Of a DNA stretch of 64,000 nt, positions 17,401 through 47,200 are shown piece by piece (positions within the stretch are counted from its first letter, which is position 1; each line of letters begins with the position of its first letter). The stretch comes from Podarcis cretensis. Lineage: Eukaryota. The notes under the pieces were generated by a model that worked only from the letters and a program-made list of their open reading frames with translations, had not been told where the DNA came from and ran no database searches. The position numbers were made by a program, and so were the translations under genes. Where the stretch lies: positions 2,790,001 through 2,854,000 of the forward strand of contig OX638150.1 in NCBI GenBank assembly GCA_951804945.1. The letters are read 5' to 3'.

Positions 17401-20400
17401 TATTTCTATTCTTATTATCTAATTTTCCAATGTTATATCTCTAATTTTAGATATCCTTTATTCAAATCTTAAAAAATTAAATATAACCTGAAACTTCCAA
17501 AAATTTATCTTTTCTTGAATTTAACTTATCTTCATAATTCACTTCATCTAGCTTAATGGTGCCTAGTTGTTTGTACTCTAGCATCCTTCTTAACATTCAT
17601 ACAATTTACAATATTTTTGTAAGTAAGTCTTAAATTTCTTCCAGTCTTCTTCCACCGTCTCTTCTCCCAGGTCTCGGATTCTGCCAGTCATTTCAGCCAG
17701 TTCCATATAGTCTATCAGTTGCGTCTGCCATTCTTCCAATGTGGGTAAATCTTGGGTTTTCCAATGCTTAGCAACGAGTATCCTTGCTGCTGTTGTTGCG
17801 TACATAAAGAATGTTCGGTCTTTCTTTAACACCTTCTGGCCGACAATGCCCAGCAGGAAGGCCTCTGGTTTCTTGGGGAAGGTATACTTAAATACCTTTT
17901 TCAGTTCATTATATATCATTTCCCAAAAAGCCTTCACTCTAGGGCAAATCCACCAGAGGTGAAAGAATGTTCCTTCATTTTCTTTACATTTCCAACATTT
18001 GTTATCAGACAAGTGGTATATTTTTGCAAGTTTGACTGGGGTCATATACCATCTATATATCATTTTCATAACATTTTCTTTCAAAGCATTACATGCAGTA
18101 AAATTCAGCCCAGTAGTCCACAACCTCTCCCAGTCCTCAAACATGATGTTATATCCAATATCCTGTGCCCACTTTACCATAGCTGATTTAACCGTTTCAT
18201 CTTGTGTATTCCATTTTAACAGCAAGTTATACATTTTTGAAAGCACCTTAGTCTTAGGCTCTAACAATTCCATTTCTAGCTTCGATTTTTCCACCTGGAA
18301 TCCTAACTTTTTGTCATGTTTAAAAACTTCTTTAATCTGAGCATAGTGTAACCAATCTCGCACTTTGTCTTTCATTTTCTCCTGACTCTGCAATTTCCAA
18401 TTATCTCCATCTTTTTCTAATATTTCCCAATACTTCGGCCAATTGGCCTCCATATTGAGTCTTTTCTGCAGGTGGGGAATATAACCTTTTACTGCTCTCC
18501 ATGTTTTATAAAACAAAACTGTGCACTTAAAAAAAGGAGGCAGCACACATAATGGAGAAAGGGTAGTACAGTGGTACCTCGGGTTACAGACGCTTCAGGT
18601 TACAGACTCTGCTAACCCAGAAATAGTACCTTGGGTTGAGAACTTTGCTTCAGGATGAGAACAAAAATCGTGCAGCAGCAGGAGGCCCCATTAGTTAAAG
18701 TGGTGTCTCAGGTTAAGACCAGTTTCAGGTTAAGAACAGACCTCCGGAACGAATTAAGTTCTAAACCTGAGGTACCACTGTACTTTCCTGCTATACTAGT
18801 TTACTAAGGAGGGCAAACAAAAAATCTTACAGGAGGACTCACGCAAGAGACAAAGGTAGCTAAGACATGGCATTTCACCTAGAGTGTCTGTATTATGGAG
18901 TGGTTCATAAAAGAGGAGATGCTCCTTGTTTTATTCTGGGCCTGGGCCATTTGGGACTTTTCTTTTGAAGTGTGCCTATGTATGCATATGCAATACTGCA
19001 AGGAAAAATGGCGTCTGGGATCCAGCAGTCACCGCAAGTACCAGGGACAAGAGTAAAAAGAATAAGTAGAGGCCTTGAACAGTGGTCAGAGAAGGCTGCC
19101 AGGTGCAATCTTGTCCAGAAGGCACTAAATTTAGGGTCCTCCAATTCCTTGCACTAGGCAAATGTGCTGACATAAAAATCTAGCTGAGAAAAATGCTAGG
19201 GAAGCAGGCATGATGACACTCCCTTCCTCTCACACTAGGATCTTTTTGACAGCTCTTCACCCCTATCATGCTTCCCTGGATCTGAGCAGTCAGACAACCG
19301 AAGGCCTTGTCCTTGATTTCACTACAATCTCCGAATCCCCCTTTCAGGAATTTTAATTCACCTTCCTGAGAAACAACCTTTACTCCCTTTGCCATCTCTA
19401 GCACATCTCTACTGTTCACTGAAAAACCCTGCTCTCTCTCCTTTCCTGTGAATCATTTTGTATAGCTTATAAGTCCTCTGGGCATGGAGGTGGGATGCAT
19501 CAACAACACCTACTGCACCACTGGCACAAAGGGAACTGCTAGACTGGTGTTTTTAGGCAAGTGTATCCTGCAATATGTTCTTCACACAATTATAGTGCAC
19601 CAGTGGTGGATTTGTTTTGCTTTATTATCTGTTCTAAGGTGCTTCCCCAATGCTACCACATCATGGCTGTCTTCAGCAGCTATAGCAGCACACCAAGGGG
19701 GGGGGAGAGAATGTTTGTGGTATGAAAAGTTACACGATTTCAGCAGGAAGTTACAGGATATGCTCTAGTTAGAAATTAAGCAGTATGACGGCTCCAAAAC
19801 TTTTGCAGATGTGAATAGTATTCTGCTGAATTATTTGGCTGGTGAGTCTCTGCATGTTTTACGGCAGGCACACTGACATAATGTAACATGCATTGCAGCG
19901 TGCTTCATGCAGAAGCCCTCCAGTGTGTAAACCCAAGTTGCATGACCTCCTTTCTATAAGGAGGAAGAACCATGTGACTCAGTCCTCTGTGTGTATCGGT
20001 TGATGCATGGCAGGCACACTTCACGTGTGGAGACAGGGGAGGTGGGGCCCATGACTGCTCCTGTATCACATAAATTGGGCCGCAGTACTAGCCCTGTAAA
20101 CTTATGAAATGGAACTGCATTTCTAGCTGCTTCCAGAAGAGAGGGAGTTGTGGGGAAAGAGAGAAGAGAAATTAACTAAATGTGAAAGGCTTCTGCAGAT
20201 TTCATGTAAGTTGGCACAGTAGGCAGTTGGGGGTTGGAAAAAGTTTTAAAACATTTATAGTTGTTAAAAGCAGAAGCGACCAGCTACCGCTGCCTCGAGC
20301 CCACTCTTGTGCGCTATCTGAAGCATCTCAATGAAACACACTTCTCATCTTGATTCAAGAGGCTGTGAATGACAGAGCACCCACCCCCCTCCTTGGGCAG

Positions 20401-26200: not shown

Positions 26201-29200
26201 TGCAGTCCTAGGGGTGATAATGGTTCCCTACCTCCACCCAGGATAATGCCACATGTGAACCCACCATCTGAACACTATTTGGGGCCAGGTAGAGGCTGAA
26301 GAGAAACAGCTTAGACATGCTAAGCCCGGGAATGTGGGATTCAAAGAACCAAGGCTACTGTCACAGGAGCATTCTGGAAGCACGCAGGAGAACTGACTCA
26401 CCTGGCAGAAGCTAAGTTATATAACAGACTCTTCCCAGGCATTTTTAATACCAAATAGAGTTAAATTCACCTTTATGTCCATGTCAGGATCGACAAATTC
26501 CTTCAGGCACTCGATGGGGCCCATCAGAAAAGGGCAGTGATTGGTGAACACCTGCCAAGAGTCAGAATGCAAGAAGTGATGCAACAGAAAAGTGCTGATT
26601 CTTCTTGCTTGCTATAATGCTGTATTGCCTGCCCTTCCCATAAGTCCTGCTGCATAAAACCATTATACTTTATCATCCAGCATGATCAAAAGGAAATCAA
26701 GGAGCAGGAATGAATGCTTTTGCTCTGGGTGTGGCTGGGAATATATGCACAATTTGCGATCACTCACCTCTTGAAGGCCCTCTTGTGCCAGGGACCTGAA
26801 CCACAGAATCTCCCCAATTATGGTCATCCTCTTCAGAACATTTTCGGCGGCTGTGGAGAGCACATGGTTATTGGTCCCAATTTTCTAGCAGCCACAGAAT
26901 TCCTGGATGTGCATAACTTGCTTGGTTAATTCTATGGAAAACAGTGCAGTCCAACCCACTTTAGGACAGAAACCCCAGTAGGGAGGTGTAATGTGGTTTC
27001 ATTATTTGGATCTTTGAGCAGGCATTCTTACAGCGCTACATCTTCTGGAGTGTTTTCTGAACTTTGCTGAGTTATACAAACCTACATTCATGAGAATTCC
27101 TTTGCCTATTTGCAATGGATTTTTAAAAATCGCTGCTCACAAGCAGCAAAGGACTATTTCAGCTATTGCTTCACTCCAAATTTAGCCATTCAGGTGGCTG
27201 CGTGGTGGCTTCTGGAGCAGAGAACAGAAGAACTGAGGCCGTACGTAACCTTTGCCTGTCACCTACCAGTTAGGCGGGGTAGCAGTGCGGCCATCTGCTC
27301 TGGCTGGTAGAAGTTAGATCGGATCTGAACCAGTACATCCATATTCTCTGTCACTAGTTTCTAAAAAGAAGAAAATAAAGTTCTATCATACAGACTTTGA
27401 AAACTGGCCATACAGATGATGTCCTGACAGGGCAGCTCAGCACCAACCATGGTCCTGATGTTGTGCATGAGTTCAAGAAATACCCCACCACCCCACACTA
27501 AGGTGGTGGTGAGAGGTGGCAAGAGAGGGTGGAAGGGGAAAGAGATAGGGGCTGAGCCCAAGGGGCCAACCATGAAGGAACAGCAGCCCAGTCAGAGAGG
27601 CGATGGACACCTGTGTCTTCCCTGGCTGTCAACCCACAGGGAAGGAACTTGATGCTGCCACCCTTGTGGCCCCAAACACTCCCCAGCCAAGAGAAGGGAC
27701 TATGGTCTGCTTGGCTGTAAAGGCCCACTCACAGGAAACAGGAAATGGGTGTGGCTATACAAGAGGATGACATGCTGAGGAAGAAGGATCTCCAGAGCTT
27801 GTTTCAGAGTCAGAAACTAGGATGAGAAGGCACATGGTTGATAGACAACATAGTTGATAGACAACCTTCTGAGGCCTTGAGCAATTGGTTGACAACAAAG
27901 GATAGCCTTGAGTGTTCAACTGAGTGGTGCCTGATGCACCACCCTGAACACCAGGATTGTACTCTCATCAGTGGGTGACCAACTCCCTCAACCCTGTGGA
28001 TCAGTCGCACAGGAGAACTCAGCGGCAGCACAGCAAACAGCAAATCAGTTGGTTCCACTGATGCATGTGAATCAACAGAGGCACAGACATAAGGAATATC
28101 CTTTTGACAAAAGCAGTCCAGCTCCAACCTGCCCATTCCTTCCCACAAAGCACAAGGACATTTATAACACTCAGATGCTCTGTTTTAATCAGTGCCCCTG
28201 AACCACTGTTCACACGATATGGCAGAGCTGAGTTGCAGGACAGCAAATTGCAGCAAGCTCCCTTCTCCTCCTGGCCTCCTACCTTCAGCTCCACCATCTG
28301 TGAGGTGATGTGCCACATGAGGTTATCACTTAGGAACTTCATTCCGTAGGGCCCAAGGAGTTCTGCCAGGGCTCGCATCTCTGCAGAGGGAGGAAAAGGT
28401 AACAGCATACTTTGCAGACTAGCAGCAGGCACAGTGTGACCAATTCTTTATTGCTGTTCCCTGTGGATGTCTGCCAAGTGCTGGTTCCTCTCTTAGAATC
28501 ATAGAATCATAGAGTTGGAAGAGACCACAAGGGCCATCGAGTCCAACCCCCTGCCAAGCAGGAAACACCATCAGGGCACTCCTGACATATGGTTGTCAAG
28601 CCTCTGCTTAAAGACCTCCAAAGAAGGAGACTCCACCACACTCCTTGGCAGCAAATTCCACTGTCGAACAGCTCTTACTGTCAGGAAGTTCTTCCTAATG
28701 TTTAGGTGGAATCTTTTTTCTTGTAGTTTGGAACCATTGCTTCCATGTCCGCTTCTCTGGAGCAGCAGAAAACAACCTTGCTCCCTCCTCTATGTGACAT
28801 CCTTTTATATATTTGAACATGGCTATCATATCACCCCTTAACCTCCTCTTCTCCAGGCTAAACATGCCCAGCTCCCTTAGCCGTTCCTCATAAGGCATCG
28901 TTTCCAGGCCTTTGACCATTTTGTGTTTTTTTTTAAATGATATTTATTAAAGTTTCGAATAAAAACATATAATCACAGACAACAATAAAAACATACATAA
29001 ACCAACAAACCAAAAACAAGTATAAATTCAAACCTTATTTTCTAAACCTAATTTCCCCGACCTCCTCACACCTCCCCCTTCTGTATTCTAATCTCATTTT
29101 TCTTGTCAGCAAATCCATTCCCATGTTTCCCATAGTTTTTAATAATTCTATTCTTTTTCCTTAATCAACGCCCCTGCAAACCACTAATTTTTATCGTTGG

Positions 29201-32200
29201 TTGCCCTCCTCTGGACGCGTTCCAGTTTGTCAGTGTCCTTCTTGAACTGTGGTGCCCAGAACTGGACACAGTACTCCAGGTGAGGTCTGACCAGAGCAGA
29301 ATACAGTGGCACTATTACTTCCCTAGATCTAGATGCTATACTCCTATTGATGCAGCCCAGAATTGCACTGGCTTTTTTAGCTGCCGCATCACACTGTTGG
29401 CTCATGTCAAGTCTGATTATGCAGGCAGCAACAGAGGCCTACGCCAGCTGGACAAACTGAGAGGCCTTGCCCACCTTTCTCTGCATTGTGCAGGACATCT
29501 CAAGCTCTCATTGGCTCCTCTAAGCCCCGTCTTCCGTTTGGCTGAACACTCCTTTCAGGACAGGTCAAATCCTAACCATGAATATTTTGGCAGCCAGATA
29601 AGGATTACTCTCTGCTTCCTCCAACTTCCTGAGCTCCAGCTTCTATACTCCTTTACTTGCTTCTCCACACCTTACTATGGATTGCTTCTTCAGTTTTGAA
29701 CATCCACTATAATCCACATGACTGTTTGCCCAAGATAATAAAATGGGCTTGCTAATGGATTTTGATAGATAGATAGATAGATTCTTTATTGTCATTACAC
29801 AAGTGCAACATTGCACAAGTGCAACGAAATTGGATGCCATCCCTTAAAAACAACAAAAGCAAAACAACAACAACAACCAAACAAACCACATTCCATTTTT
29901 TTAATGGCGGCGCGCAGAGACGCTGCGGCTCAGTGCTCTCCTTTTGTTTTCAGCGTTTTGTTTTGTTTTCAGTGTTTTGTTTTCATTATTTTTACTTGTT
30001 CTGAGTATGTTTGGCCGGGCAAGAAAGATTTATAGCAGGCAGGAACTTCTGAAGGTCGGGTTACAGTGTGAACAAGCTGTGAGAGCTGATTATTTTCGCC
30101 CAGATAACGCTCCTGTGGGAGTAGCCAGGCCACCGGGCTCTCCATGGATTACTATGCCTCCAGGGAGGAGGCGAAGGCGGCGTAGAGACAGGAGGCAAAG
30201 GCGGGGTTGTCGGGCCGGCGTCCTGGTAAGATTGCAGAGGAGTCCATCTAAACCACCACTCCCTAGCATATTTCTTGCTAATGTGAGATCTCTTGCCAAC
30301 AAGATGGATGAATTGAGGCTGCTGGCAGCAAAGAACAGTCTCGTAAAAGATTGCTGCGTCTTATTTGTCATTGAGACATGGCTTCAACCGTCCATACCAG
30401 ACACGGCTATTCAGTTGGAAGGCTGTGTGGTACATCGTCATGACCGAGGCATGACCTTCGGAAAAACCAAAGGAGGGGGGCTGTGTGTATATGTGAACAA
30501 ATGCTGGTCCAATAATTCTAAGACCGTGGGCAGTTACTGTTCACCGGATTTGGAATATGTGGCTGTTAAATGCAGACCAGCCTATCTCCCTAGGGAGTTT
30601 ACAGCTGTTATGCTAACTGGTGTGTACGTGCCACCAGATGCCAATGCCAACTTGGCTCTGGGATGCCTGCAGAGCCTTATCAGCAGCCAGCAAGACAAGC
30701 ATCCTGAAGCTGTGCACATCATTGCGGGAGACTTCAATCATGTTGAACTTAAAACAGTGCTCCCAACGCTCTATCAGCATGTGAAATGTCCCACAAGGGG
30801 GGACAAGACACTGGATAAAGTTTATTCGAATGTAAATCACGGCTATAGGGCCTTACAGCTGCCACATTTGGGCCAGTCCGACCATATGTCTCTGTTCCTG
30901 GTACCAGCATATATCCCACTCAGGAAACGGGCTCCCACAATATCAAGGACTGTTAAAATCTGGCCTGAAGGCGCTATCCACCAGCTGCAGGACTGTTTTG
31001 AGAGAACCAATTGGGATATTTTCGATCGTTCAGACCTGGAGGAGCACACGGCGGCAGTTCTGTGCTATATCAATCACTGCACAGATACTGTCACAGTAAA
31101 TAAATCTATCCGGTTTTATCCCAATCAGAAACCCTGGATGAATAGAGAGGTCCAGTGCCTGTTGCGGGAAAGGAATAGGGCTTTCAGGTCGGGCGAGGTG
31201 CAGCTTTACAGTGTGGCAAGAGCAAACTTGAAGAGGGGTATTCGACGGGCAAAACTGGTCTATAGGCAGAGGATTGAGGATAATTTAAGGAGTAACAACA
31301 CAAGACAGATGTGGCAGGGGATTCAGCATATTACCAACTACAAACCTAACCTTGGTGCTGTCGATGGTGACCCTTTGCTGGCGGAGGAGCTTAACTTTTT
31401 CTTTGCTCGCTTCGAGAAGGAGCCACCTGAGACGCCGGTATTACAGCCACCAGCCCATAGGGGCCCCTCATTCACTGTAGAGGAGCATGAGGTGAGACAG
31501 GTATTGAGGATGGTGAATCCGAGGAAGGCTGCTGGACCTGATGGCATCACGGGAAAGGTGTTGAAGGGCTGTGCGGATCAGCTGGCGAAGGTCTTTACTA
31601 AGATCTTCAACAAGTCCTTACACCAGTCTATTGTCCCACCCTGCCTGAAGTCGTCAACTATTGTTCCTCTGCCTAAAAAATCTACAATCAGTAGTTTGAA
31701 CGACTACAGACCAGTTGCACTGACTCCAATCATCATGAAGTGTTTTGAGAAACTGGTGCGCCGTCATATAATTTCCTGTCTTCCATCAACTTTTGACAAC
31801 TACCAGTTTGCATACAGGGCAAATAGATCCACGGAAGACGCTATCACTATCACTCTCCATGCTGCTCTGTCCCATCTGGAGCAGCCGGGGAGTTATGTGA
31901 GGCTGCTGTTTGTGGATTTTAGCTCTGCTTTTAACACTATCCTCCCCCATAGACTGGTGTCCAAGCTAGAGGCGATTGGACTCTCCAACTCCACCTGTCT
32001 CTGGGTTTTGGATTTTTTGTCAGAACGTTCTCAGAGGGTTAGAGTGGGGTCACATATGTCCACAGCCCTTAGCCTTAACACCGGCTCACCACAGGGTTGT
32101 GTGTTGAGTCCCCTGCTCTATACTCTCTATACGTATGATTGTACAGCCATCTATCCCAGCAACAAAATCATCAAGTTTGCTGATGACACTACGGTGGTGG

Positions 32201-35200
32201 GGCTCATTTCAGGAGGGGATGAGTCCGCCTATCGGGACGAGGTGGAGCGGCTTTGTGTTTGGTGTGGAGAGAACAATCTGGCTCTTAATACGGCTAAGAC
32301 CAAGGAATTGGTGGTGGATTACAGGAAAAAAAAGGCGGACATTCAGCCCTTGTATATCAAAGGGGAACGGGTGGAGAGGGTGGCGGAATTCAGGTTTTTG
32401 GGAGTGACTATCGATCAGGGCATGACTTGGAGCGCAAATACCACTGCTCTGGTGAAGAAGGCCCAGCAGAGAATTTATTTCCTCAGACTTTTAAAGAAGA
32501 ACAATCTGAGTGAGAGACTGCTGGTGTCCTTCTACCGAGGCTCCATAGAGAGCATTCTCACATACTGTATTTGTGCCTGGTTCTCCAGTTGTACAGCTAG
32601 GAAGAGGAAGGTGCTCCAGAAGGTCATAACCACAGCCCAAAGGATTATTGGTCATCCTCTCCCATCTTTGGAAGAACTGTACGGTTCCCGTTGTCTTAGG
32701 AAAGCAAACAACATCCTGCAGGATGCATCTCACCCGGGATACAGTCTGTTTGCACTACTGCCTTCTGGCAGGAGATATAGAAACATCAAGTCAAGGACAA
32801 ATAGACTGAAAAATAGTTTCTATCCAAGAGCTGTGGCCTTTTTAAATGCTGTAACTCGATAGTGTGACCTGGGAGTTTGATGGGTGTGGGTGTGGGTGTG
32901 GCTGGAATGTGGTTTGTTTGGTTGTTGTTGTTGTTTTGCTTTTGTTGTTTTTAAGGGATGGCATCCAATTTCGTTGCACTTGTGCAATGTTGCACTTGTG
33001 TAATGACAATAAAGAATCTATCTATCTAACACAACCCAGTTCATTCTTAAGATATTTTTCCTTAATCTTTTTCCTTAATCAACGCCCCTGCAAACCACTA
33101 ATTTTTATCGTTGGTTGCCCTCCTCTGGACGCGTTCCAGTTTGTCAGTGTCCTTCTTGAACTGTGGTGCCCAGAACTGGACACAGTACTCCAGGTGAGGT
33201 CTGACCAGAGCAGAATACAGTGGCACTATTACTTCCCTAGATCTAGATGCTATACTCCTATTGATGCAGCCCAGAATTGCACTGGCTTTTTTAGCTGCCG
33301 CATCACACTGTTGGCTCATGTCAAGTCTGATTATGCAGGCAGCAACAGAGGCCTACGCCAGCTGGACAAACTGAGAGGCCTTGCCCACCTTTCTCTGCAT
33401 TGTGCAGGACATCTCAAGCTCTCATTGGCTCCTCTAAGCCCCGTCTTCCGTTTGGCTGAACACTCCTTTCAGGACAGGTCAAATCCTAACCATGAATATT
33501 TTGGCAGCCAGATAAGGATTACTCTCTGCTTCCTCCAACTTCCTGAGCTCCAGCTTCTATACTCCTTTACTTGCTTCTCCACACCTTACTATGGATTGCT
33601 TCTTCAGTTTTGAACATCCACTATAATCCACATGACTGTTTGCCCAAGATAATAAAATGGGCTTGCTAATGGATTTTGTGACTTCTACTGAGTAGCAAAG
33701 TCACAGAACCATACAATTGGAGGGGCACTCATAGACAGTTCAGTCCAACCACTGTCACAATGCAGGAATGCAAGAGCATCATAAACAAATGCAAGAGCAT
33801 CATAAACAGATGCCTGTCCAAAGGAGCAAGGGAGAGCCTATCACCAATGGGTCCACTGTCCTGATGGCTAGGGCGGGAAAGAACAAGTCTTTGCTATGTG
33901 ACAGGCACTTGGGTATTTGAAGAGTGAGATCATGACCCCACCCCTCTCCATTCCTGGACGAATAACCACTCATCGTGGCATCACTGTGGTCAGTCTTGTT
34001 GCCAAATTCAGCTCAAGAACCACTACTGCAACTAAGCCTTGGGTGCTCCAGACTGCGTGTGTGAGCACCTACCTGAAACATCAGAAAACTCTTCAGCACT
34101 GAAGGTCTGTTCCCCTTCTTTGGGTATACTGACAAAGGTCTGCATTGATGGGGAAAGGACAATGGAGCCCATGCTGGCTTGGCGCAATAGTGACTCCAGG
34201 TACCTGGGAGTGACAGCAAAGGAAACATGATATAATTTAGCTCAACAAAATGCTGCTGGAGGAGTCAGCTGATTAGGAGGTGGGGGAGGGGAGCCATGCC
34301 TATGGGAAAACCTCCTTAAACAGGACTTTGGCCCAGAGTAACAACTACCTGACACCTACCTGCCTCTCTTACTACTGCTACTGACCTTTTTTCAAAGGAG
34401 AGAGACAGAGATGACAAAGTTGAGCCATATCTGCTGAGCCTTTGTTTCCATATGCATGAGTGAGGCTGCTCAGTGCTTAGGGAAATCTCTCTGCGTATAC
34501 TTAGGAGAACTCTCTTCATTAATATCTGAAATATTGGCATTTAAAGCAGATTCAGGGGCTCGTCCTGGGGGGTCTTGAAACAAATTATGTCCTGCCTACT
34601 ATGACAGTATAATGCCCCAACCAGCCCCTCCATTTTCCCAGCCCCATACCAGTTGGTATAGAGTGTGGTGAGGGTCTGTTCCCCACTTGCATCCAGGGGC
34701 TGGGTCTGCTGCAGAAGTACGTTGCGGAGGAGGCGCCCAGTATCCAGACCTATGCGATGCATCAGTGAAACCAGGAAAGTGGTATAGGCCTGCACACCTG
34801 CCAACGCTTCTGAGGGACGTGCCAGTTCTGGGGAGCTTGGGTTTGGCTTTGCCAGCCGCACCAGAGACCTGGGGGTGGGGATGTGAATGGTTAGTGGATG
34901 TGCATTGGCCAAAAGAAAAAAGCACCCAAACACCCCAGCCCCTACACAGTTGGCAGCTTGATGTTCATCCCTCTGCCTACCTCTCAAGCTAAAGTTTCCC
35001 AATATGTAGTGGTATCTTGAATAGCTTGTTTTCTTAATGAGCACTGAGGATCAGGTGATGTTCCAGGCAAGGAAGACAGGTCATATCTACTTGGATGATT
35101 GGGACTGAAATCCGTGCTCTACTGGCAGCAGCGGGGGGTGAGGTAGATGGCAGCACGAGAAAAACATAAATGTAGCCAGTGAAGGAGACACAAGCCTGAG

Positions 35201-38200
35201 TTTTCCAGCTGGCTGCCAAGAAGCAGCCATGGGGAGAACTGCAAGGACTGAATGCTGTTGCTTTGGGGGAAACAGTGGTCCTTTGAAAATTAGCAAAGTT
35301 TGAGCATCTGCTCCCCATTGCTCACTAATGAGCCCAGCCCAGCTCCTGTCAGGGTGATGAGACTATCAAGTGCTTCGCTGTGATCCTGCCAGCTCTGTTC
35401 TGGGACTTTAATCTTTGCAGCAATCACTTGATTTGCTGACTCCTCTTTCTCCATACAGTTAGCCATAAGCACTTTGCCACAAAGAATGACGAAACAAAAA
35501 TTAAAATATGAAAACACCTACAATACATTGTTACCCATAATATTTTCACAAAGACAAATCAAGGGAGTTTCACAACAGATACATGATTCTTTAAAAAAGC
35601 CCTCACTATCAAAATAACTGTGTCATTACTAAGGGGAAGAGAGCAACCTAGTAGGTGTTGGTAACTGAATGGGCATTTTAAAAGAGTAGAAGACAGTCCC
35701 CAGAGGAAACACCCTTTGGCTTAGATGGTAAATGGCAAAAATTCTCGCCTCTGGCATGGCAGTCAAAGCCTGCTGTCAGAACCTGCTGCAAAACCTAACC
35801 TCAACAGCTTTGCCGATTAAGTTAAGTTTTGCTAAATACGAGGTCAGCTAGCTCAAATTGTGAAATCTACCAACACATGTTCAGGAGATGCAGTCACCAG
35901 GACTGAAGCACTAAGCCAACAGAAGCAAGTGCATGGGACAGAGGACAGCAGCAGCACTTTGGGGGCAGCCAACTTAATTACACATCAGTGTAATTACACT
36001 TCAGTGTAATTAAGCAAGACTCAAGTGTTCATATCTAACAAATCCACCCCACTGCCACCTTCCTGCCTCTCCCACATAATCGGCACTACTGAGCAAAAGC
36101 TGTAGCACATGCACCATAGCTGTGTACTTCTATGGCTTCTCTCGAGAACAGACCCATAATCAATAGTGCCACATCACTTCCTGCTGCGCCCCTCACGTCC
36201 TGTACCTGCTAAGGCGTGTCTCCAGCTGGCTGCTGAGGTACTCTGCTGGAGTCACGGTGTGCTCAAAGACAGCAAAACTGGTCACGTTGTTCAGGCTCCA
36301 GCAGATCTCAGTCAGCGTCAGGTGCAGCTTGTCCAGACTGGAAGTGGGGGTGGGGAGAAGATGATAGTGGGTTAGAGCAATTGATACCGACTGCCTGGTT
36401 TGCAGGAGGCAGAGAAGTACTGGCCAGGCGAGAACCACATCAGTCCAACTCCAGAAGCACTTCGCAACCAAGGACAGAAGGAGGGGCAGTAGGACACACT
36501 GTCTTCCCATCCCCTGCTCTTCTGATCATGTCTGTTTACACACACACACAATATACATATGAAAATGCAACCTATTATAACCAAAATGCCCTATCTCTGG
36601 TCAAACAGGCCCAATTATATTGAATATTCAACATGTAGCAGGTCATTTAAAGCATAAAATGCCATTAGTTTTATCGATCACCCACTCTCCCAAGCCTGCA
36701 CTCCACCCCAAAAACACAGAGTGTAGCTGGTTTGGGTCCTCCCATTCATTCCGTCCTCTGGTTCCCTAAGGACACCAGAATCACATCTTGCTGCCACCAT
36801 TCTAGTTCTCCCTTCAGGGAAGCACCCCACCCCACAAATACACATTAGGAACAATGGATGTTCGCAGTGTCAGACTCACTGCTGGGAAAATTGGAGCTCA
36901 TTCATTCCACCTCTGACTGGCAAGTCTCTAGTTCAAGAGGCCCTGCAATGGCCCCACCCTGCAGTGTTTTGTGGGAGAATATTCCAGATTTTTTTGGGTG
37001 GGGGGCAGGATAGCTATAGGCAAGCTTTCTGCCACGGGCAGGGGAAACATTGCCCACCTCTGGCTGCTTTAGCCTTATTTACAACTAAAGGGCAAAATAA
37101 GACGTGACTGATCTTCTGACTTTAAAACAAACTTCAAAAAGAAGCTGGGGTGGGGGCCAGGAATGCTCCAATTTTGATTGGAGCAGCAGTTTTGGAGGGC
37201 CCCTCCCACATGCCCTGCATAGGAAAGTGGGCAGGAAGGAACTAGGGATGTCATCCTTTCACCCTGGGTGGAAACAGTAGCCTAATTTGCAGAGTCCTGC
37301 AACAACCCATTTGAGGATCCCTCCTCCACTGCAGAAAAATAACCCTTCCCCCTGTACTGTTTTCCTGACCAAGCTTCGCCTCTCCAAAGCTGCTATTAGC
37401 CCTGCTGGGCAGGAAATACATATACCATATTATGCCTGTCTTATTTCTGAAATTATGAATAGCTTCGGGTCAGCGAGCAATTTCAGCCAGGGAAAAATGG
37501 TGGGAAGTTTAAACATCCCCTCTCTTGCAGCCATTGCTTCAATAAAAAAATGGAACTGCCATGACTGCTTTTTAAGTTAAAACTCCAGAACATAAGGAGA
37601 TGTGAGAGCATGCATCTTCCATACAACATTTGTTTTGACCCGCCCCCTAGTTGGAGCCATAGAAACACCTTGCAAAACACCTAGGATTAATGGCATTTTC
37701 CATGCTAACCACCAGACAGATCTTTGCATGCTTGACTGGTGAGGTGGTATCATTTTAAGTGCACCCTCGGTCCTGTTTTAACCATATGGCAGTGTTTCTC
37801 AAACTTGGGTCTCTAGCTGTTGTTGGACTACAACTCCCATCATCCCTAGCTAGCAGGACCAGTGGTTAGGGATGATGGAAGTTGTAGTCCAACAACAGTT
37901 GGAGACCCAAGTTTGAGAAACACTGCCGTAAGGCTTCAATCGTGCTGGTATGAAGAAGTTTAACGTTGCCCATGACGTGCTGCACGGGTTCATTGTGGCC
38001 TTACTTGGTGACCAGGCTGCGGTCTTTCCGGTGGCTCTCTGCACCAGGCTTGTCCCTCTCTGGCTCTCCCTTCTTGGATGATGCTTTTTGGGTCCTCTTG
38101 TTCCGAGCCTTGCTGATGGTGGCAGCACAGTGCTTGGGTAAGAGCTGGGAGACATAAAAGAGGCGAGGGGGTTATGGGTGGGTGGGTGTATTAAGAAAGG

Positions 38201-41200
38201 GTCTGCTGCAAATCACAAGGTGTGTTGAACCAAAGGGGAAATGTTCTGGAAGGCCTGCAAACACCATCTTGGTAGTCAAGATGACCCCCAATATAATTGG
38301 TAGTTGCTGAAATAATGAGCTTGTCTATATTTACGTTTCCTTGCTTTGATATATGCCAATTGGCTTGCTTTGATGCTGTGCTTATCTTTGGCCTTGCTTG
38401 GGATGCTGGGCTCTAAGCCAAGAGAGGGGAGAAACTTTGGATAGCTGTCATCTATGGCCTCACCAGCCGTGTGTGATGGGAGGTTCTGGGGAAACTGACA
38501 TATGCTGCTTTGCGCAAAAGGCCTGTTTGCTTGGGCGCAGACATGTCATGAGGACCTCTCACTGTTGTGGTGCCCCTCTCGTGTCTGCAAAGCCAGTGAG
38601 GCCCTGCACGCTGTGTTATAAGTTTACATCTTTCCTTAATAAAGTGCTAGAACTGGCTATTCTGGCATTCTAGGCATCCATTTTTGGTAACCCTGCACCA
38701 AATCACTTGCACAAGGCTTCCTTGGGGTCTGTGGTTCAGAACACAAGGGTAGCGGGGTCAGGTGGGGGAGGAGAAAAATTATTCCCTGGGGAAACCTTGC
38801 TTCAACAGCCAGGCATGGTCCCTGGTTACCAGGAATCTGGACAAGGCAGTTATTCTGATAAATCCTTTGCAGACTCCTCACTCCGGCTGCCCCCTTTTCT
38901 GCATTCTGCCTACAGCCACAGTGAACTCCTCTTGCATGTGGGAGTGTTCGCTCAGTGCCAGAGAAGTGTGCAGTTTTTGCTCCTTCCCAAACTATCCAAG
39001 ACTTAACAGGAGCCCTGAGAACTGAGTGAACCTCTTTCATCATAGCTACACAGCCTCATTGGCATAACTTCACCCTGGGTTCCATTCCATTAAAAGTGTG
39101 GAGGATCTCATTGCCTGGGAGAGTGCTGCCTGCTGCACTGACAGAAGATGGAAGCACTTTCCCAGAGAGAAGATGTCATCTGTCACAGGGCTTGTGCTCT
39201 GCAGCTCTTTCCGATATTTTGATTTACAGTGGTACCTCGGGTTACATACATTTCAGGTTACAGACTCCGCTAACCCAGAAATAGTACCTTGGGTTAAGAA
39301 CTTTGCTTCAGGATGAGAACAGAAATCGTGCTCCAGTAGCGCGGCGGCAGCAGGAGGCCCTATTAGCTAAAGTGGTGCTTCAGGTTAAGAACAGTTTCAG
39401 GTTAAGAACGGACCTCTGGAACGAATTAAGTACGTAACCAGAGGTACCACTGTACCCTGACAGTATTGAATTGAATTAATTGTTTTAATGAATTTGTTGC
39501 TGTTGTTGTTTGCTTCGTTCATATGCAACTGTGTTTGATAATACAGTGATTGCAATGTTATGATGATTACTCTGAGCTCAACATTTGTTATTGGAAAAGT
39601 GGAATATCAAATCAAATCCTATCATTCCTTTGTCCTGCCCAACAGACTGCAACCAGGATTGTAAGATTTTAACTCTGCTTTTGATGCTTATTTGAATGTG
39701 TTCTAGAAGAGATTGGATTATCAACCTGCTATGCCAGTAAGATTCTTTGCACATCAATGCTCATTCTGCAGATCAGCCAAGAACAAGTACACAACACAGG
39801 CCTCATGCAGAGAGGAAGAACAAACCAGATTCATCAAGCCAACAATCCATGCAGTTTTTTTGTTTTTATCTGCTCTCATATGATTTTGATTTTTATACCA
39901 TTTTATTGTAGTTTTGCCTCTTTATGAGACATTGGATTTTACCGTGAGCTGCATTGGGTGGGAAATAAATGTAACACAATAATAAAACAGGAGGATTCAA
40001 ACTTGTCATTCAAAGTGCAAGATATCTTCAAGTTTCCAAATCAGATTTTATCTACCTGGGTTTCCCTCTTTCATTCCATTTTGGCCAACCATCATTTCTG
40101 AGTTCAACATGCCCAGGAAATGTCTGGCAAGCTGAATTAGTCATACATTCTGCCCGATCTTCCCCTGTCCCCTGCCCCATATGCTCCAATCACAGAATAG
40201 TGATTGCGCTATCCTATGCTGCACAGAACTCCACTAGAATACTGCCACTTTCCCCACTCTCTTCATGCCAGTCCCAGATCTGCCTCCAATGCCCATTGCC
40301 CAGCGTCCATAAAGGAGTTGGCTTCCTACCTGCTCACTCAGGTTGCGCTGTTCAGCAGAGGCATCCAGGATACAAGTGCAAGCCTGTTTAGCCATCTCTT
40401 CCAGGAAATTGTTGCACAGACCCAAGGCACAGCTCTGCAGATGAGGATACTGAACCAGGAAAAGAAAGAAGCACCTGAGATCTACAAGGGAGCTTTAGGT
40501 GCCATGCTTGCTGCAAGTCTCTGCTGGCTGCCCCTCTCAGAGGCCGTGAGTGGGCACTTTCCTTGTTCATTGTCACAAGACAGGGTTAAAAGAATGGGGC
40601 TCCAAAGGCCTGCTGTCACTGTAGCCTCCAGGAGAGCAAAGCTCTCTGTCCACTGACAGTGCGATTTATTCTTGAGTAAAGTGAGCATAAATCTGCAGGC
40701 CTACCAGCTTAATCCTATGCATTTTTTAATCCAAAGAAAGGTCTGCCGTGTTCAGTAAGGCTTACTTCCTAGAAAGTTGCAGCTTAAATTAAACAAAAGT
40801 AAGGGTGGAATTCAGGGTGGGACGCAGGTGGCGCTGTGGGTTAAAGCCTCAGCGCCTAGGGCTTGCCGATCGAAAGGTCGGCGGTTCGAATCCCTGCGGC
40901 GGGGTGCGCTCCCGCTGCTCGGTCCCAGCGCCTGCCAACCTAGCAGTTCGAAAGCACCTCCGGGTGCAAGTAGATAAATAGGGACCGCTTACCAGCGGGA
41001 AGGTAAACGGCGTTTCCGTGTGCGGCTCTGGCTCTGGCCAGAGCAGCGATGTCACGCTGGCCACGTGACCCGGAAGTGTCTCCGGACAGCGCTGGCCCCT
41101 GGCCTCTTAAGTGAGATGGGCGCACAACCCCAGAGTCTGTCAAGACTGGCCCGTACGGGCAGGGGTACCTTTACCTTTACCTTTACCTAAGGGTGGAATT

Positions 41201-44200
41201 CAGCGCCCCACAATTATGATCCTTCCGTCTGCAAAAGCATTTCGGCTTGCCAGATGGAACCATTTCCCCTCCCCTCCCCATGCTATTTGGGGTTCTCCTG
41301 ACCCTCTGGAGGAAATGTGAGAGTCCCATTGCTTTCATGGGAGTCCTTGTACTAGTACACCAGGTTACTTGAATCTGGCCCTGTATTTTCAAACCCACAC
41401 AGAATAAATTATTCAAATAATAAGCTTCATTTACATAAATGAATACAGTGGACAAAGTTCTGCTTTTCTGGTTATCTTGGTGCAGGATTTGACATTTGTA
41501 TCTCAAAGTAGACCCGGCTCTGACTACAAGGCAGAGGCATGAAAGCCGAACTCATATAAGCCCAGTAAGGGCACTCTCAATGATTTGACACTTGGCGTCT
41601 TTGCTCTTTCAGCTCCAGCTGCTTCTCCTTGCCCTCCCCATCCCATGCATACGCACCTCCTCGGGGCACAATGGATGGGAGGCATGGCTGAAGTCGGCAC
41701 ACAGAAGCGGGAAAGCAATGGAATAGCGCAACATTGATGGCTCCTCCATGGTGGATGCAAAGAGTTTCTCCAAGAGGCGCACATAGAAACTGTTAAAGGA
41801 AGTGAGACGTCATGAACCGGGGCAAGTGGGAGCAATCAAGGGCACACATGAAGTTGCCTTACGCAGAGTAAGTCCATCAAGCTCAGCACTGCATATAAAT
41901 ATTTTGGGGTGGGGAAGGAGTGTTTCCAAAAATTATGTACAAAGTAAGTACTGTAAATAATTAAAAGTCACAAAATTTCAATCCATCAGAAAACTCAAAT
42001 AATTAAGGAAGCCAGGTTCAAAGTGTGTGTATGGAATGTCAAAGTTAGCTAAAGGGGGTCATGGGTTTTTAAAAGTTGAGAAACCATGGTAGGGGGGTAG
42101 GAGAGCTGGGGGGGGAATTCATGTCTGAAAACCAATGCACCCCTTTAGTTTCAGATAGCACATGGATAGACGAGTGTAAAAAGCCCAACGCACAAAATTT
42201 CACAGCTCTCTAGCAGATACATGGCTCATTTACCAGAGGTAAGGTATTTAACTCTGGAAGTGTATACAGTGGTACCTCAGGTTACATACGCTTCAGGTTA
42301 CATATGCTTCAGGTTACAGACTCTGATAACCCAGAAATAGTACCTCGGGTTAAGAACTTTGCTTCAGGATGAGAATAGAAATCGTGCTCTGGCGGCGTGG
42401 CAGCAGCGGGAGGCCCCATTAGCTAAAGTGGTGCTTCAGGTTAAGAACAGTTTCAGGTTAAGAAAGGACCTCCGGAATAAATTAAGTACTTAACCCGAGG
42501 TACCACTGTACTCGATTCTGACCAAACTAAGCCTTCTAGGAGGCTTTTCCCTAAACACATTACTTCTGGTAAATAAACTACCATAGTCGCTAGAGGGCTG
42601 TGAAAATTTGTGACCTGGGCTTTTTAGACTCGTCTACCCAAGTACTATCTGAACCCAAAGGGGCACTTTGGTTGCCAGATGTGAAATATCTTGGCTCATT
42701 CACACTTCCACTTCTCCCATGCCTAGAAAGCAAGGGTCTGGGCAGTTTCTGCTTGACCCATGCTTCCTAAGCATGGGTCTGAGTGGTTTTCCCAGGCCCT
42801 GCTCCTTTCCCAGGGAAAATCCGCCCTTTAATGTTAATCCAGAGATCACTCAAATTGCCCTTTGCTCCAACTGAGTGCCATAGAGTGGGTTTTCCCACGG
42901 AAAAGCAGCAGGAGAAGAGGAAGTGTGGATAAGCCTTGACTAGAGCAGGTCAACAGAATTTCATAGGTCATTCCCAGCCATACCTGGAGATGCCAGAGAC
43001 TGAACCAGAGACCTTCTACAAGCAAGGTGGATGGTCTACCACTGAGCTATGGTTGTTCCCCATAGAAGAATAGGTGCATCTATATGCACCAGTTTTCACC
43101 TTCATCCCCATGTCCATGCCTCCTCCTCCCACTCCTTTTGTGCAACCCCTCTTCCACACACACCTACAACCTTGTGCTGCAACTATGAAGCACCCTTTTC
43201 CCCTTCTGCCCAATGATGAAGCCACCATTCTCTCCAATTCTGCAGACCCTTTCATATCCCTGCTTTCATCCCCAATACCATTCCCATGCCTCCTACTCCC
43301 TCCTTTTTTGCAAACCCCTTTGCACCACCATTTTCATCTTTATCTCCTTTTTCTTAGTCCCTCCTCATTTTTCTCAACTCACACACCCATTTCACACACT
43401 TGCTCATCACCTCCTTAGCACAATCTGAGCCGGCAACAAACAGTACCACACTGCAGTCAGGATGGCTGTGTGAATTGGCACCCTCTTTTCTTCATTCTTT
43501 ATACCCAAAGAACCTGCCTATGTTGGGGCCTTTATTTTCTAACCTTCCCTTCAAAAAAACCCCCCAACATTTGCCACGTAAAACCAAACCAGACAACTAT
43601 GCAAATTAACTGCATTGACTGCATTTATGCCAGGATGCATGTGTACTGGTAGCCGACATACTCCACCCTGTGTGCCCCAAATCTGCTCTGCTGTCACTAT
43701 TCCCTTCCTCCATGCCATATACACACCAGAATATAGAGAGGTCCGATGTCTCGACCATCAAGTCCTCCACAGAGTCCAGCATCTTAGTGTGAAAGACGAT
43801 GAGATTCATCACCTTGGCAATGTCATGATTCTCCCGCAGTTGCAAGGGAGCCTTACTAACACTGGCGTATGCCTAGTGGAAGAGGAAAAAAGATATTCCT
43901 TGGGAGAAAGAACCCATGCTCTCTGACACTTCACCCTAAGCACTGAAAAGTAGTACGTTGCTGTTGTTGGCATCCCTCTGTCTCGAGACAACGGGGTGTT
44001 TTTCCAGGAGCGAAGCCAAACTGCTAGAGAATCACAGCACCTGCTGTGGCTGTAGAGACCAGCAACCTGTAATTGCTGCCTTCCACATTACTTTTGTTGC
44101 GTTAGCAACACTGAAGTGACCTTTCCAGGGCGCAAGCCTGGGCAGCGTGTGTAGAGGTCCTGGACTGCCCAGACCACAAGACCTCTTGGCCTCACTGATA

Positions 44201-47200
44201 CAGTCCAAAGGAAAGCAGAGTAATACATTTGGTACCAGCTGGACTGTAGGAGTTGCTGGAAGGAGGCATACAAAAGGCCATCCAAACATCTTAGGGAGTC
44301 AAGATTTGTGTAGAGTTTACTCCTGAGTCTTTGCTTCTCCCAAACATGTCCCACAAGGCAGTGGGTACAGATTTTTCCTTGGGGAATCTTCTTCCAGGAT
44401 TTTTCCTTGGGGTTTACTCCCAAAGCCTTTCTCATGAATGAGTATAGCCGCTGGGCAGCAGAGGTTTAGGATCAGAGTTTTTCTTCTCCTGGATGGGCTA
44501 CTTTCCCAGGTTGACAAGCCCCAACAGCAAGATTGCTCTAAATTACAGAGTGACAGGGCCAATTCACATACACATGTACATCATTTGATCACACACTTGA
44601 CTCTTCTCAACTGAACATTAGGAAGAACTTCCTGACAGTAAGAGCTGTTCGACAGTGGAATTTGCTGCCAAGGAGTGTGGTGGAGTCTCCTTCTTTGGAG
44701 GTCTTTAAGCAGAGGCTTGACAACCATATGTCAGGAGTGCTCTCATGGTGTTTCCTGCTTGGCAGGGGGTTGGACTCGATGGCCCTTGTGGTCTCTTCCA
44801 ACTCTATGATTCTATGATTCTATGAACATGTGACTGTCTCAAATGAGCAATATTACATTTTGAGTGTTAATCAAAAAACAGTAAAATTGTACGTGTATCT
44901 GTGATGGCTCATTTACACACACACGCTAATGCTGGATTCAGTCATTATGGAATATGCAGGTTCAGTCCTCAGGAATGTGGAATCTACTTTTGTTATTCAC
45001 TAGAGCCTTGAGATCCACCAACAAGAGGCAGGTCCAAAACAGCGACTTAGCCAGGCAAACACATGTTAAGTGTTAAAGAACAGGATGCCTCTGGGCCCAT
45101 GCTCATCCCAGGAATTTGTGATCAGTTCCCCAACCAAGCTCACAAGTGCTATGCAGGGGACTCCCCACTTCCATGGAGGCTTCTGCATACATAAGTGGAA
45201 TCATGTGAAGTGGGGAGCGCCCTCTACACACCCTCTCTGCCGCTCTGTCTCCAATACATACCAAAAATACTGCATCCAAAAATATCCACAACTAGAACTG
45301 AAGCTCTGGGGCCGGCAGGAGGCCGGTGGACATGCAGGAAAGCAGTGGCGGCTGCGCTACCCTGCACATCAGCGGTCAGGCAGGGAGGCTGGGCAGCCTG
45401 AGCAAAGCCCCGCTGCACCCCCAGTCTCTTCAGGGCTTCCTCCAGCCTCACTGACATCCTCTTTGGGCCAACTAACAACAACTGGATCCTTTAGATGGAG
45501 AATGAATGACACCCTATTCAAGGATGAAGAGATCCACAAGAAGGCCCTTAAAACATTAAAAGATTACTTTGAGATCAACAGGAAAACAGATGTGGAAAAA
45601 AGAATAATCTGGGACGCAAGTAAAGCCGTGATGCGAGGTTTCCTAATTCAACAAAATTCTATAAAGAGGAAGCAACAAAATGAGAAGAAGGAAAAAATTC
45701 TAGAAAAAATAAAAGAAGGAGAGAAGAAGTTGAGGTCCAAACCAAAGTCCCATGAGATTTTGAGAGAAATAAAGTTTTATCAGATGCAGTACATGGAGCT
45801 CATGAACCAACAAATAGAATGGAAGATAAAGCAAATGAGACAAAGAACTTTTGAATCAGCGGATAAATGTGGGAAACTTCTGTCATGGCAATTGAAAAAA
45901 AGGCAGAAAATGAATACTGTAACAAGTCTAGAAATGGATGGAAAAATTATCCACAAACCCAATGAGATAAACAATTGTTTTCAAAGTTTTTTTAAGAAAT
46001 TATACGCACAAGGGCCAATCAACGAACAAGAAATAGAAGAATTCATCAGAAAATACGGTTTACCAAAAATTTCAGAACAAAGTAAAAGGATCTTAAATGA
46101 GGAAATAACAGAACAAGAAATAGAGGGTGCCATTCAAAATATGAAATTGGGAAAATCACCAGGACCAGACGGCCTGACGGCCAAATACTACAAAATGTTG
46201 AAAGAACGGCTGATACAACCATTGAAGGAAGTTTGCAATGAAATTTTGAAGGGGAAAAAGGCACCTGAATCGTGGAAAGAGGCTTTCATCTCACTTATAC
46301 CGAAAACAGAGACTGAGAAGAACCAGGTCAAAAACTACCGCCCTATTTCTTTACTTAATGTGGATTACAAAATTTTTGCAGACATTTTGGCAAAAAGATT
46401 GAAAAGAGTGTTGGCAGAAGAGATTCATAAGGACCAAACAGGCTTTCTCCCAGGTAGACATATGTCAGACAATGTGAGGAACATTATAGACATTTTGGAG
46501 CTGCTGGACGTTGACATTAACAGGAAAGCAGTTTTGATTTTTGTGGATGCGGAGAAAGCCTTTGACAACATTTGTTGGACTTTTATGAAAAAGAATCTCC
46601 AAGGGATGGGGGTAGGCCAAGGTTTTGAAAACGGTATAGGTGCAATATATTCTCAACAAAAGGCCAAATTAATTGTAAATAACGTGGTAACAGAAGAAAT
46701 ACCTATAGAAAAAGGTACACGACAGGGTTGCCCAATATCCCCTCTGCTTTTTATATCAGTCCTGGAGGTTTTGTTAAATATGATCAGAAAGGACCAGTTG
46801 GTTAAAGGAGTTCAGGTCGGAGTTAGACATTATAAATTAAGAGCATTTGCAGATGATCTAGTATTGACCTTGCAACAGCCAGACACCAGTACTAAAAGAG
46901 TATTAGAATTAATTGAAATATTTGGTCGAGTAGCAGGTTTTAAATTGAATAGACAAAAAACGAAAGTGTTGGAAAAAAATTTAACAATGGAAGAAAGAGA
47001 GAGTTTTCAGAATGAAACAGGCTTGGAAATAACAAAAAGGGTAAAATACCTGGGGGTAAACTTAACATCCAAGAATGTGAACTTATTTAAGGATAATTAT
47101 GAAAAATGTTGGTCAGAAGTTAAAAAGGATCTGGAAATATGGTCAAGGTTGAAACTTTCCTTGTTAGGCCGAATCGCTACTATTAAGATGAATGTATTGC

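Follow-up and report, generated by a model that had tools for sequence, protein, structure and literature searches.

A full-length Rex1-type LINE in the genome of the lizard Podarcis cretensis lies head-to-head with an inverted copy of its own 3' end, between two identical copies of a 613-bp block of host DNA. We propose that this locus arose by one recent, aberrant retrotransposition with two starts of reverse transcription ("dual priming"), at 3' ends on opposite strands that were some 0.61 kb from each other, and with head-to-head joining of the two cDNAs. We give this explanation an even chance of being right. Coordinates are positions in the window, which is the entire 64,000-nt stretch that we analyzed (GCA_951804945.1, OX638150.1, 2,790,001-2,854,000, forward strand). 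The features of the locus are:

29152-29764, no strand: left copy of the host block, 613 bp, identical to 33066-33678
29765-29782, minus strand: inverted microsatellite tail, which reads (ATCT)4.5 in the minus-strand sense and directly adjoins the end of the left block
29783-29895, minus strand: inverted perfect copy of the element's last 113 nt of 3' UTR, terminal hairpin included (part of the 126-nt inverted repeat, 100%)
29896-29902, no strand: filler of T7 between the two head-to-head parts (the first-strand cDNA would have A7 here), read from the sequence
29903-33028, plus strand: full-length LINE, classified as Rex1-type (CR1 superfamily) from protein matches and from alignment of its 5' UTR and 3' UTR to a distant Rex1 relative, L001
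30007-32862, plus strand: intact ORF, 951 aa long and uninterrupted by stops, with a weak match to APE-type endonucleases, a reverse transcriptase (RT), and a PF09004-like C-terminal motif
32971-33006, plus strand: stem-loop predicted in the 3' UTR, immediately before the tail; the direct copy and the inverted copy each have it
33016-33028, plus strand: 3' microsatellite tail of the full-length copy, (ATCT)3.25, read from the sequence
33029-33054, no strand: orphan sequence of 26 nt at the 3' junction, with no match in the window
33055-33067, no strand: additional copy, in tandem, of the 13 nt that begin the block, TTTTTCCTTAATC; its final 2 nt are also the first 2 nt of the perfect repeat
33066-33678, no strand: right copy of the host block, 613 bp, identical to 29152-29764

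Comparison of the window to itself confirmed, to the base, the order of block, inverted tail, T7, full-length Rex1, and second block that the initial annotation had described. The two copies of the block form a direct repeat (613/613 identical, 0 mismatches); past its upstream edge there is one mismatch, followed by 2 further matching bases. The inverted arms (29770-29895 and 32903-33028) are 100% complementary over 126 nt. Neither the block, nor the arms, nor the element occurs again in the 64-kb window, and 0 matches are expected for the repeats of this locus in shuffled sequence. With 0 differences across 613 + 126 bp and an intact ORF, the locus points to a single young event.

The block itself contains an old fragment of a CR1-like ORF2 (left copy, minus strand, around 29190-29330). 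This frame matches a repeat that is exonised in a gene model from Zootoca. A protein search with a mechanical ORF of 249 aa that spans the right junction had this same Zootoca gene model, with its exonised CR1-like repeat, as its sole match. The match covers the CR1-like repeat inside the block and is uninformative about the right junction.

The 951-aa protein is about 97% identical to a cluster of 27 members, and the 14 named members that are listed are all from Podarcis muralis. In a further protein comparison, the best matches were proteins from fish and metagenomes, at 50-69% identity. The initial annotation had assigned the element an APE-type endonuclease and an RT. The RT is clear (RVT_1, E = 1.3e-28 in a profile search), but the endonuclease was detected only weakly: the match to PF03372 covers the whole profile yet falls below threshold (E = 1.2e-4, 22.4 bits versus a cut-off of 24.5). 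Relatives of this protein do have precomputed matches to PF03372. In the 5' UTR, the motif TGGCGGCGCG at 29905 aligns with L001, and so do the terminal 3' UTR and the oligonucleotide tail, which is (ATTCT)n in L001 and (ATCT)n here. As in Rex1/Babar elements, we found a single ORF with an AP-type endonuclease (the sub-threshold match) and RT, and a conserved 3' UTR that is followed by oligonucleotide tandem repeats. Judging by its domains and by the similarity of its 3' UTR and tail, the element is a Rex1-type LINE of the CR1 superfamily.

Both (ATCT)n tails point outward, as the initial annotation had noted, and the inverted part begins at the 3' terminus of the element, as dual priming predicts. 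But only the left tail touches the block (the right one is 37 nt away), and the two tails are unequal: the left one has 18 nt of (ATCT)n and the right one 13 nt. Because it is 5 nt longer, the left tail is not a plain DNA copy of the right tail. Outward tails of unequal length, and an inverted piece that is the 3' terminus of the element itself, hairpin included, fit two separate initiations of reverse transcription. As far as the sequence goes, the 126/126 identity and the unequal tails would fit either two RNAs from one source or one RNA that was used again. Just upstream of the tail, the RNA of 32903-33028 is predicted to fold at -30.9 kcal/mol (z = -2.7), and by analogy with CR1/L2-type LINEs, we presume that the predicted stem-loop is the module that RT recognizes. 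At the inner junction, the direct copy reaches the conserved start of the 5' UTR, so this junction corresponds to the 5' end of the RNA. T7 is not found upstream of the conserved 5'-UTR start in L001, and it is typical of homopolymer filler from untemplated addition.

The two outer junctions are quite different. On the left, the tail joins the block directly; on the right, 37 extra nt separate them, which comprise the 26-nt orphan and 11 nt of the extra 13-nt tandem copy. We found no match for the orphan on either strand of the window at up to 3 mismatches or with words of at least 12 nt. The right junction also has two microhomologies (T5 and TC) and a stutter (33055-33080). The orphan and stutter look like the result of template switching, a processed end, or a bridge between sister chromatids.

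Under dual priming, a plus-strand 3' end at the block's right edge, where 29764 would have adjoined the present 33679, would prime reverse transcription on the microsatellite tail of a Rex1 RNA, and synthesis would halt after 131 nt. A minus-strand 3' end at the left edge of the block, about 611-613 nt upstream, would first gain about 37 nt of filler and would then prime reverse transcription on a second Rex1 RNA tail, from the same source copy or an identical one. This second cDNA would extend to the 5' end of its RNA and then by about 7 untemplated A residues. Its joining to the short cDNA, by a template jump or by end joining, would leave the element and the inverted copy of its tail in head-to-head orientation. 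Because the overhangs of both 3' ends would span one and the same block of 0.6 kb, this block would be copied twice by fill-in or displacement synthesis, which would leave the 613-bp direct repeat. The proposal builds on what we observe, which is the anatomy, the perfect identities, the unequal tails, and a clean left junction with a messy right one. We infer the order of the steps, the use of two RNAs, the enzymes that made the breaks, and whether one duplex or sister chromatids were involved.

Dual priming would account for both oddities of the locus, the inverted tail and the long duplication, in a single event, and the 3' overhangs that it requires have the ordinary geometry of target site duplications (TSDs), only longer. 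It also fits the clean left junction, where the end of the block is followed by the complement of the tail, as at the 3' junction of target-primed reverse transcription (TPRT). Furthermore, the inverted piece has its start precisely at the element's terminus, and with the tail and the 3'-UTR hairpin it includes the place where a 3'-end-specific RT would begin. On the other side, the 26-nt orphan and the 13-nt stutter mean that the right junction falls short of a clean TPRT joint, and its T5 and TC microhomologies fit synthesis of the plus strand rather than extension of a minus-strand primer. The two break sites at this locus share no obvious motif. The case for dual priming rests on a single locus. 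The initial annotation had proposed TPRT from both ends; two starts of reverse transcription joined head-to-head fit the unequal outward tails and the inverted 3' terminus with its hairpin, but because of the orphan, the stutter, and the microhomologies, two endonuclease nicks 0.6 kb apart on one duplex are not established.

We also considered that only the left junction is a true TPRT site, with no second nick at 29152. The plus strand would jump onto a full-length Rex1 cDNA that was primed at another locus, or onto a read-through RNA; it would copy that cDNA along with 26 nt of its primer or flank, re-enter the original locus or invade the sister chromatid at a point about 0.6 kb upstream, and stutter over 13 nt, which would create the duplication. 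This would explain why the orphan has no local template in the window, and it explains the extra 13-mer base for base, by entry at T5, fall-off, and re-annealing at TC, all in the plus-strand direction. There are also precedents: bridging of sister chromatids by L1 cDNA is a published model for L1 tandem duplications (PMC7058536), and templated insertions and template switches are documented at L1 junctions. However, RT would have to switch from an internal position in the RNA onto the end of a foreign cDNA, and two concurrent events at different loci would be needed, with more steps than in dual priming. We consider this route unlikely. Replication-based rearrangements generally combine a duplication, an inverted segment, short microhomologies, and a small orphan insert. 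Since this locus has all of these features, along with the stutter at 33055-33080, one or more ordinary Rex1 insertions might have been followed by a FoSTeS/MMBIR-like rearrangement at the DNA level in which the block was duplicated and part of the element became inverted. But then a DNA breakpoint must hit the outer end of the microsatellite exactly and the tail must lengthen by 5 nt; also, the direct copy starts at the natural 5' end of the element, and the copies show no differences. So a stepwise origin seems quite improbable.

Another explanation is that the source copy in the lizard lineage already carried the inverted tail and was copied via RNA, with the duplication as an unrelated long TSD. 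This is very unlikely: the start of the RNA would have to coincide exactly with the inverted microsatellite's outer end, a perfect 126-bp panhandle would impede both translation and reverse transcription, and two independent oddities would be required. Also, although L001 is just one distant Rex1 relative, it shares the 5'-UTR start and the 3' UTR and has no inverted repeat. An assembly artefact, by false duplication or a chimeric join at a heterozygous insertion, would also yield perfectly identical copies, and the assembly does have gaps (138 N at 12754-12891). However, that nearest run of N is 16 kb away, there is no gap or contig end nearby, and at only 4.5 kb the entire unit fits within one long read. 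The exact placement of the tail at the end of the block, the unequal tails, T7, the orphan, and the stutter are biological signatures that an assembler would not make, and we regard an artefact as very improbable. We rejected three other ideas. If the element had inserted into a tandem duplication that was already there, it would have had to hit the joint exactly, and a short TSD is absent. Campbell-type integration of a circle presupposes the same junctions. And 3' transduction primed by the 13-nt homology would leave one copy of the 13-mer, not two.

If dual priming is correct, then the locus preserves, in unusually readable form, a natural LINE integration for which each target strand served as a primer of reverse transcription at the RNA's 3' end; it can be read since the inverted piece includes 113 nt of specific sequence. 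It would also extend LINE-made tandem duplication from human tumours to the reptile germline and to a non-L1 clade. The right junction suggests that repair-type template switching may help to resolve such intermediates. In LINEs whose RT is specific for the 3' end ("stringent" LINEs such as Rex1, CR1, and L2), RT starts only at the element's own tail, so any priming by the second target strand should yield an inverted tail. Dual-primed integration might even be a regular, if rare, pathway of these LINEs, which we think is rather unlikely; if so, widely staggered breaks would routinely lead to sub-kb tandem duplications and to LINE copies with terminal inverted repeats. At this locus, the perfect 613-bp direct repeats permit clean loss of the element by homologous recombination, and any transcript of the region could fold into a long dsRNA stem through the perfect 126-nt inverted repeats, which lie 3 kb from each other.

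Dual priming was proposed in 2010 as a possibility for L1 (Meyer, Srikanta, Conlin, and Batzer, Mob DNA, PMC2837659); we found it named nowhere else in the papers that we could search. As in our proposal, both target 3' ends prime on the 3' tails of RNAs, and the tails face outward inside a target duplication. But those L1 loci have a 5' poly(T) without visible element-specific inverted sequence, and their TSDs are short. Because poly(A) carries no information, dual priming and twin priming could not be told apart at those loci. Here, in contrast, the inversion covers 113 nt of specific 3' UTR, and it concerns a microsatellite-tailed LINE of the CR1 superfamily with a full-length direct copy and a duplication of 613 bp.

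In L1 twin priming, as outlined in PMC2837659 and PMC11702581 (after Ostertag and Kazazian 2001), a second primer anneals inside the same RNA. As described there, the second target strand also primes reverse transcription, and two cDNAs also end up head-to-head inside the TSD. But what is inverted there comes from upstream of a direct part that is truncated at its 5' end, and such an insertion has a single tail and a TSD of 12-18 bp. At the lizard locus, it is the 3' terminus that is inverted, complete with a tail, and the same sequence is found a second time in the full-length direct copy. So we agree with the initial annotation that twin priming of the L1 type does not fit.

The Rex1/Babar elements of fishes (Volff et al. 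2000, as described in PMC6274825) have a single ORF with an AP-endonuclease and RT. Like the element described here, whose host is a lizard instead, they have a 3' UTR that is conserved and a tail of oligonucleotide repeats that varies in length. The passages of that article on target sites, truncation, and tandem repeats do not mention an inverted 3' end or a long TSD.

Finally, tandem duplications mediated by L1 and two-tailed L1 bridges have been reported from tumours and cell models (PMC7058536; PMC11702581; bioRxiv 10.1101/2024.08.27.596794). In these, LINE cDNA also spans two distant 3' ends, but the events are somatic and mostly range from kb to Mb or are interchromosomal. Our case is in an assembled lizard genome, so it is presumably germline, and it involves a non-L1 LINE, a sub-kb distance, and one locus. 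The initial annotation's suggestion that a LINE creating duplications would be new was overstated, as L1-mediated tandem duplications are already published (PMC7058536, PMC11702581). The Rex1 locus is a variation on that theme and is not new in kind.

Sequence comparison within the window confirmed the anatomy described in the initial annotation: a Rex1-type LINE is preceded by an inverted copy of its own 3' end, and the pair is flanked by a duplicated block of host DNA. The two copies of the block (29152-29764 and 33066-33678) match at all 613 bp, and the 126-nt inverted arms (29770-29895 and 32903-33028) pair without a mismatch. Between the left block and the start of the right block are these features:

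29896-29902: T7 spacer, between the inverted piece and the element
29903-33028 (+): Rex1-type element
30007-32862: ORF of 951 amino acids, with 0 internal stops
33055-33067: additional tandem copy of the first 13 nt of the block, TTTTTCCTTAATC

The block, the arms, and the pieces of the element do not occur again in the 64-kb window, and shuffling gives an expectation of 0 matches, so chance is excluded. As far as the given sequence goes, the insertion feature is real. Its duplicated parts show 0 differences over 739 bp and the ORF is intact, which indicates a very recent event; the insertion is possibly still polymorphic.

The ORF has a strong reverse transcriptase (RT) domain as well as a PF09004-like motif, which is common in CR1-type LINEs. 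In its N-terminal third, the endonuclease/exonuclease/phosphatase profile aligns from end to end, with a score just below the cut-off. The nearest relatives of the ORF form a cluster of 27 members (~97% identity, none identical); 14 named members are listed, every one of them a protein of Podarcis muralis, a species in which the family is young and multi-copy. The next relatives are fish or fish-associated metagenome proteins (50–69% identity); identity to fish-type Rex1 proteins is 65–69%. How such a fish-like lineage arose in lacertids may merit separate study. Rex1 elements are described as combining an AP endonuclease and RT with a conserved 3' UTR and a tail of oligonucleotide repeats (PMC6274825). 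Similarly, the lizard element has RT, the endonuclease-type match, a 3' UTR, and an oligonucleotide tail. In alignments to L001, a fish-like metagenome contig that carries a distant Rex1 relative, the 5'-UTR motif TGGCGGCGCG (window 29905) is shared, and so is the terminal 3' UTR, which in L001 is followed by an (ATTCT)n tail. Because both ends are shared, the lizard copy is full length, or a few bases off. We found no inverted repeat in L001, which, as one distant relative, is weak evidence that Rex1 elements do not generally have an inverted tail.

The window contains other repeats. Within the left block, on the minus strand (29190-29330), is an old C-terminal fragment of a CR1-like ORF2, repeated at 33104-33244. 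This repeat also forms part of the translated Zootoca vivipara gene model P0135 ("ribose-phosphate pyrophosphokinase 1-like"), which probably reflects either an error of annotation or a repeat that was exonised. A 218-nt inverted pair (28491-28708 / 44608-44825, 98% complementarity), with its first copy ~450 bp before the left edge of the duplicated block, is evidently two young interspersed-repeat copies. An 878-nt inverted pair (17588-18465 / 47629-48506, 77% complementarity) is probably two old copies of one transposable element. A SINE-like repeat of ~220 nt has three copies (18567-18784, 39225-39456, and 42281-42512; 80–92%), two of them in the same orientation at a spacing of 3056 bp. 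There is also a hairpin (37782-37848 / 37867-37933; 67-nt arms, 93% complementary, 18-nt spacer) and an assembly gap (138 N, 12754-12891).

At the left junction, the last base of the block is 29764, and the complemented tail starts without any gap. The (ATCT)n tail is 18 nt in the inverted piece versus 13 nt in the direct copy. An inverted duplication made simply at the DNA level would not extend the microsatellite; a separate start of synthesis on an RNA tail would. A terminal stem-loop is also predicted within the inverted piece (fold z = -2.7; 32971-33006 in the direct copy); in CR1/L2-type LINEs, such a stem-loop is the recognition module for RT. At the inner junction, the antisense piece stops after 113 nt of UTR and is followed by T7 and the element's natural 5' end, as would be expected if a cDNA of full length had gained a few untemplated A's and was joined to a second cDNA.

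The right junction is not clean: the tail is followed by a 26-nt orphan (33029-33054), for which we found no template in the window, and then by the extra 13-mer. The last 2 bases of the 13-mer coincide with the TC that precedes it in the left copy. Read in the + strand direction, this looks like a stutter: synthesis would have entered the block template on a T-run, copied 13 nt, fallen off, re-annealed on the TC, and resumed. We found no equivalent microhomology at this junction for extension of a - strand primer.

The initial annotation proposed double-ended target-primed reverse transcription from two nicks, and the analysis supports this in part. We agree that a single event, in which RT started twice on Rex1 RNA tails, is the most economical explanation, and we give it about an even chance. 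Given the messy right junction, we do not accept a second endonuclease nick at 29152 as shown; that end may be a pre-existing or processed break. The two initiating 3' ends would be ~0.61 kb apart on opposite strands, with the geometry of an ordinary target-site duplication (3' overhangs over the block) but ~40 times longer. Once the cDNAs were joined, each 3' end could be extended through the block by displacement synthesis, so the 0.6-kb duplex need not melt on its own.

We also considered that the growing + strand used a cDNA primed elsewhere as its template before re-invading upstream, which we think is unlikely. A history in several steps, in which a replication-based rearrangement came later, seems less likely still, as a breakpoint must fall exactly at the microsatellite's outer end. 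If the inverted tail were inherited, then the RNA must start exactly at that outer end, and a separate long target-site duplication (TSD) is also required; this seems very improbable. We view an assembly artefact as just as improbable: it is hard to reconcile with the junction signatures, and there is no gap nearby.

As for known LINE events, in classical twin priming of L1 the inverted segment is internal and belongs to a 5'-truncated copy, there is a single tail, and the TSD is 12–18 bp (PMC2837659, PMC11702581). This locus does not match those expectations, and we rejected twin priming for it. Two initiations in the lizard would correspond to dual priming, in which both target-strand 3' ends start reverse transcription on RNA 3' tails. 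Meyer et al. proposed this for L1 loci with 5' poly(T), where it was inseparable from variants of twin priming (PMC2837659). In the literature we searched, the term appears in no other paper. Tandem duplications mediated by L1 are already published (PMC7058536, PMC11702581), so a LINE-made duplication is not new in principle. The novelty lies in the combination: the LINE is tail-specific and not an L1, the event presumably took place in the germline, the direct copy is full length, and the inverted 3' terminus is unambiguous.
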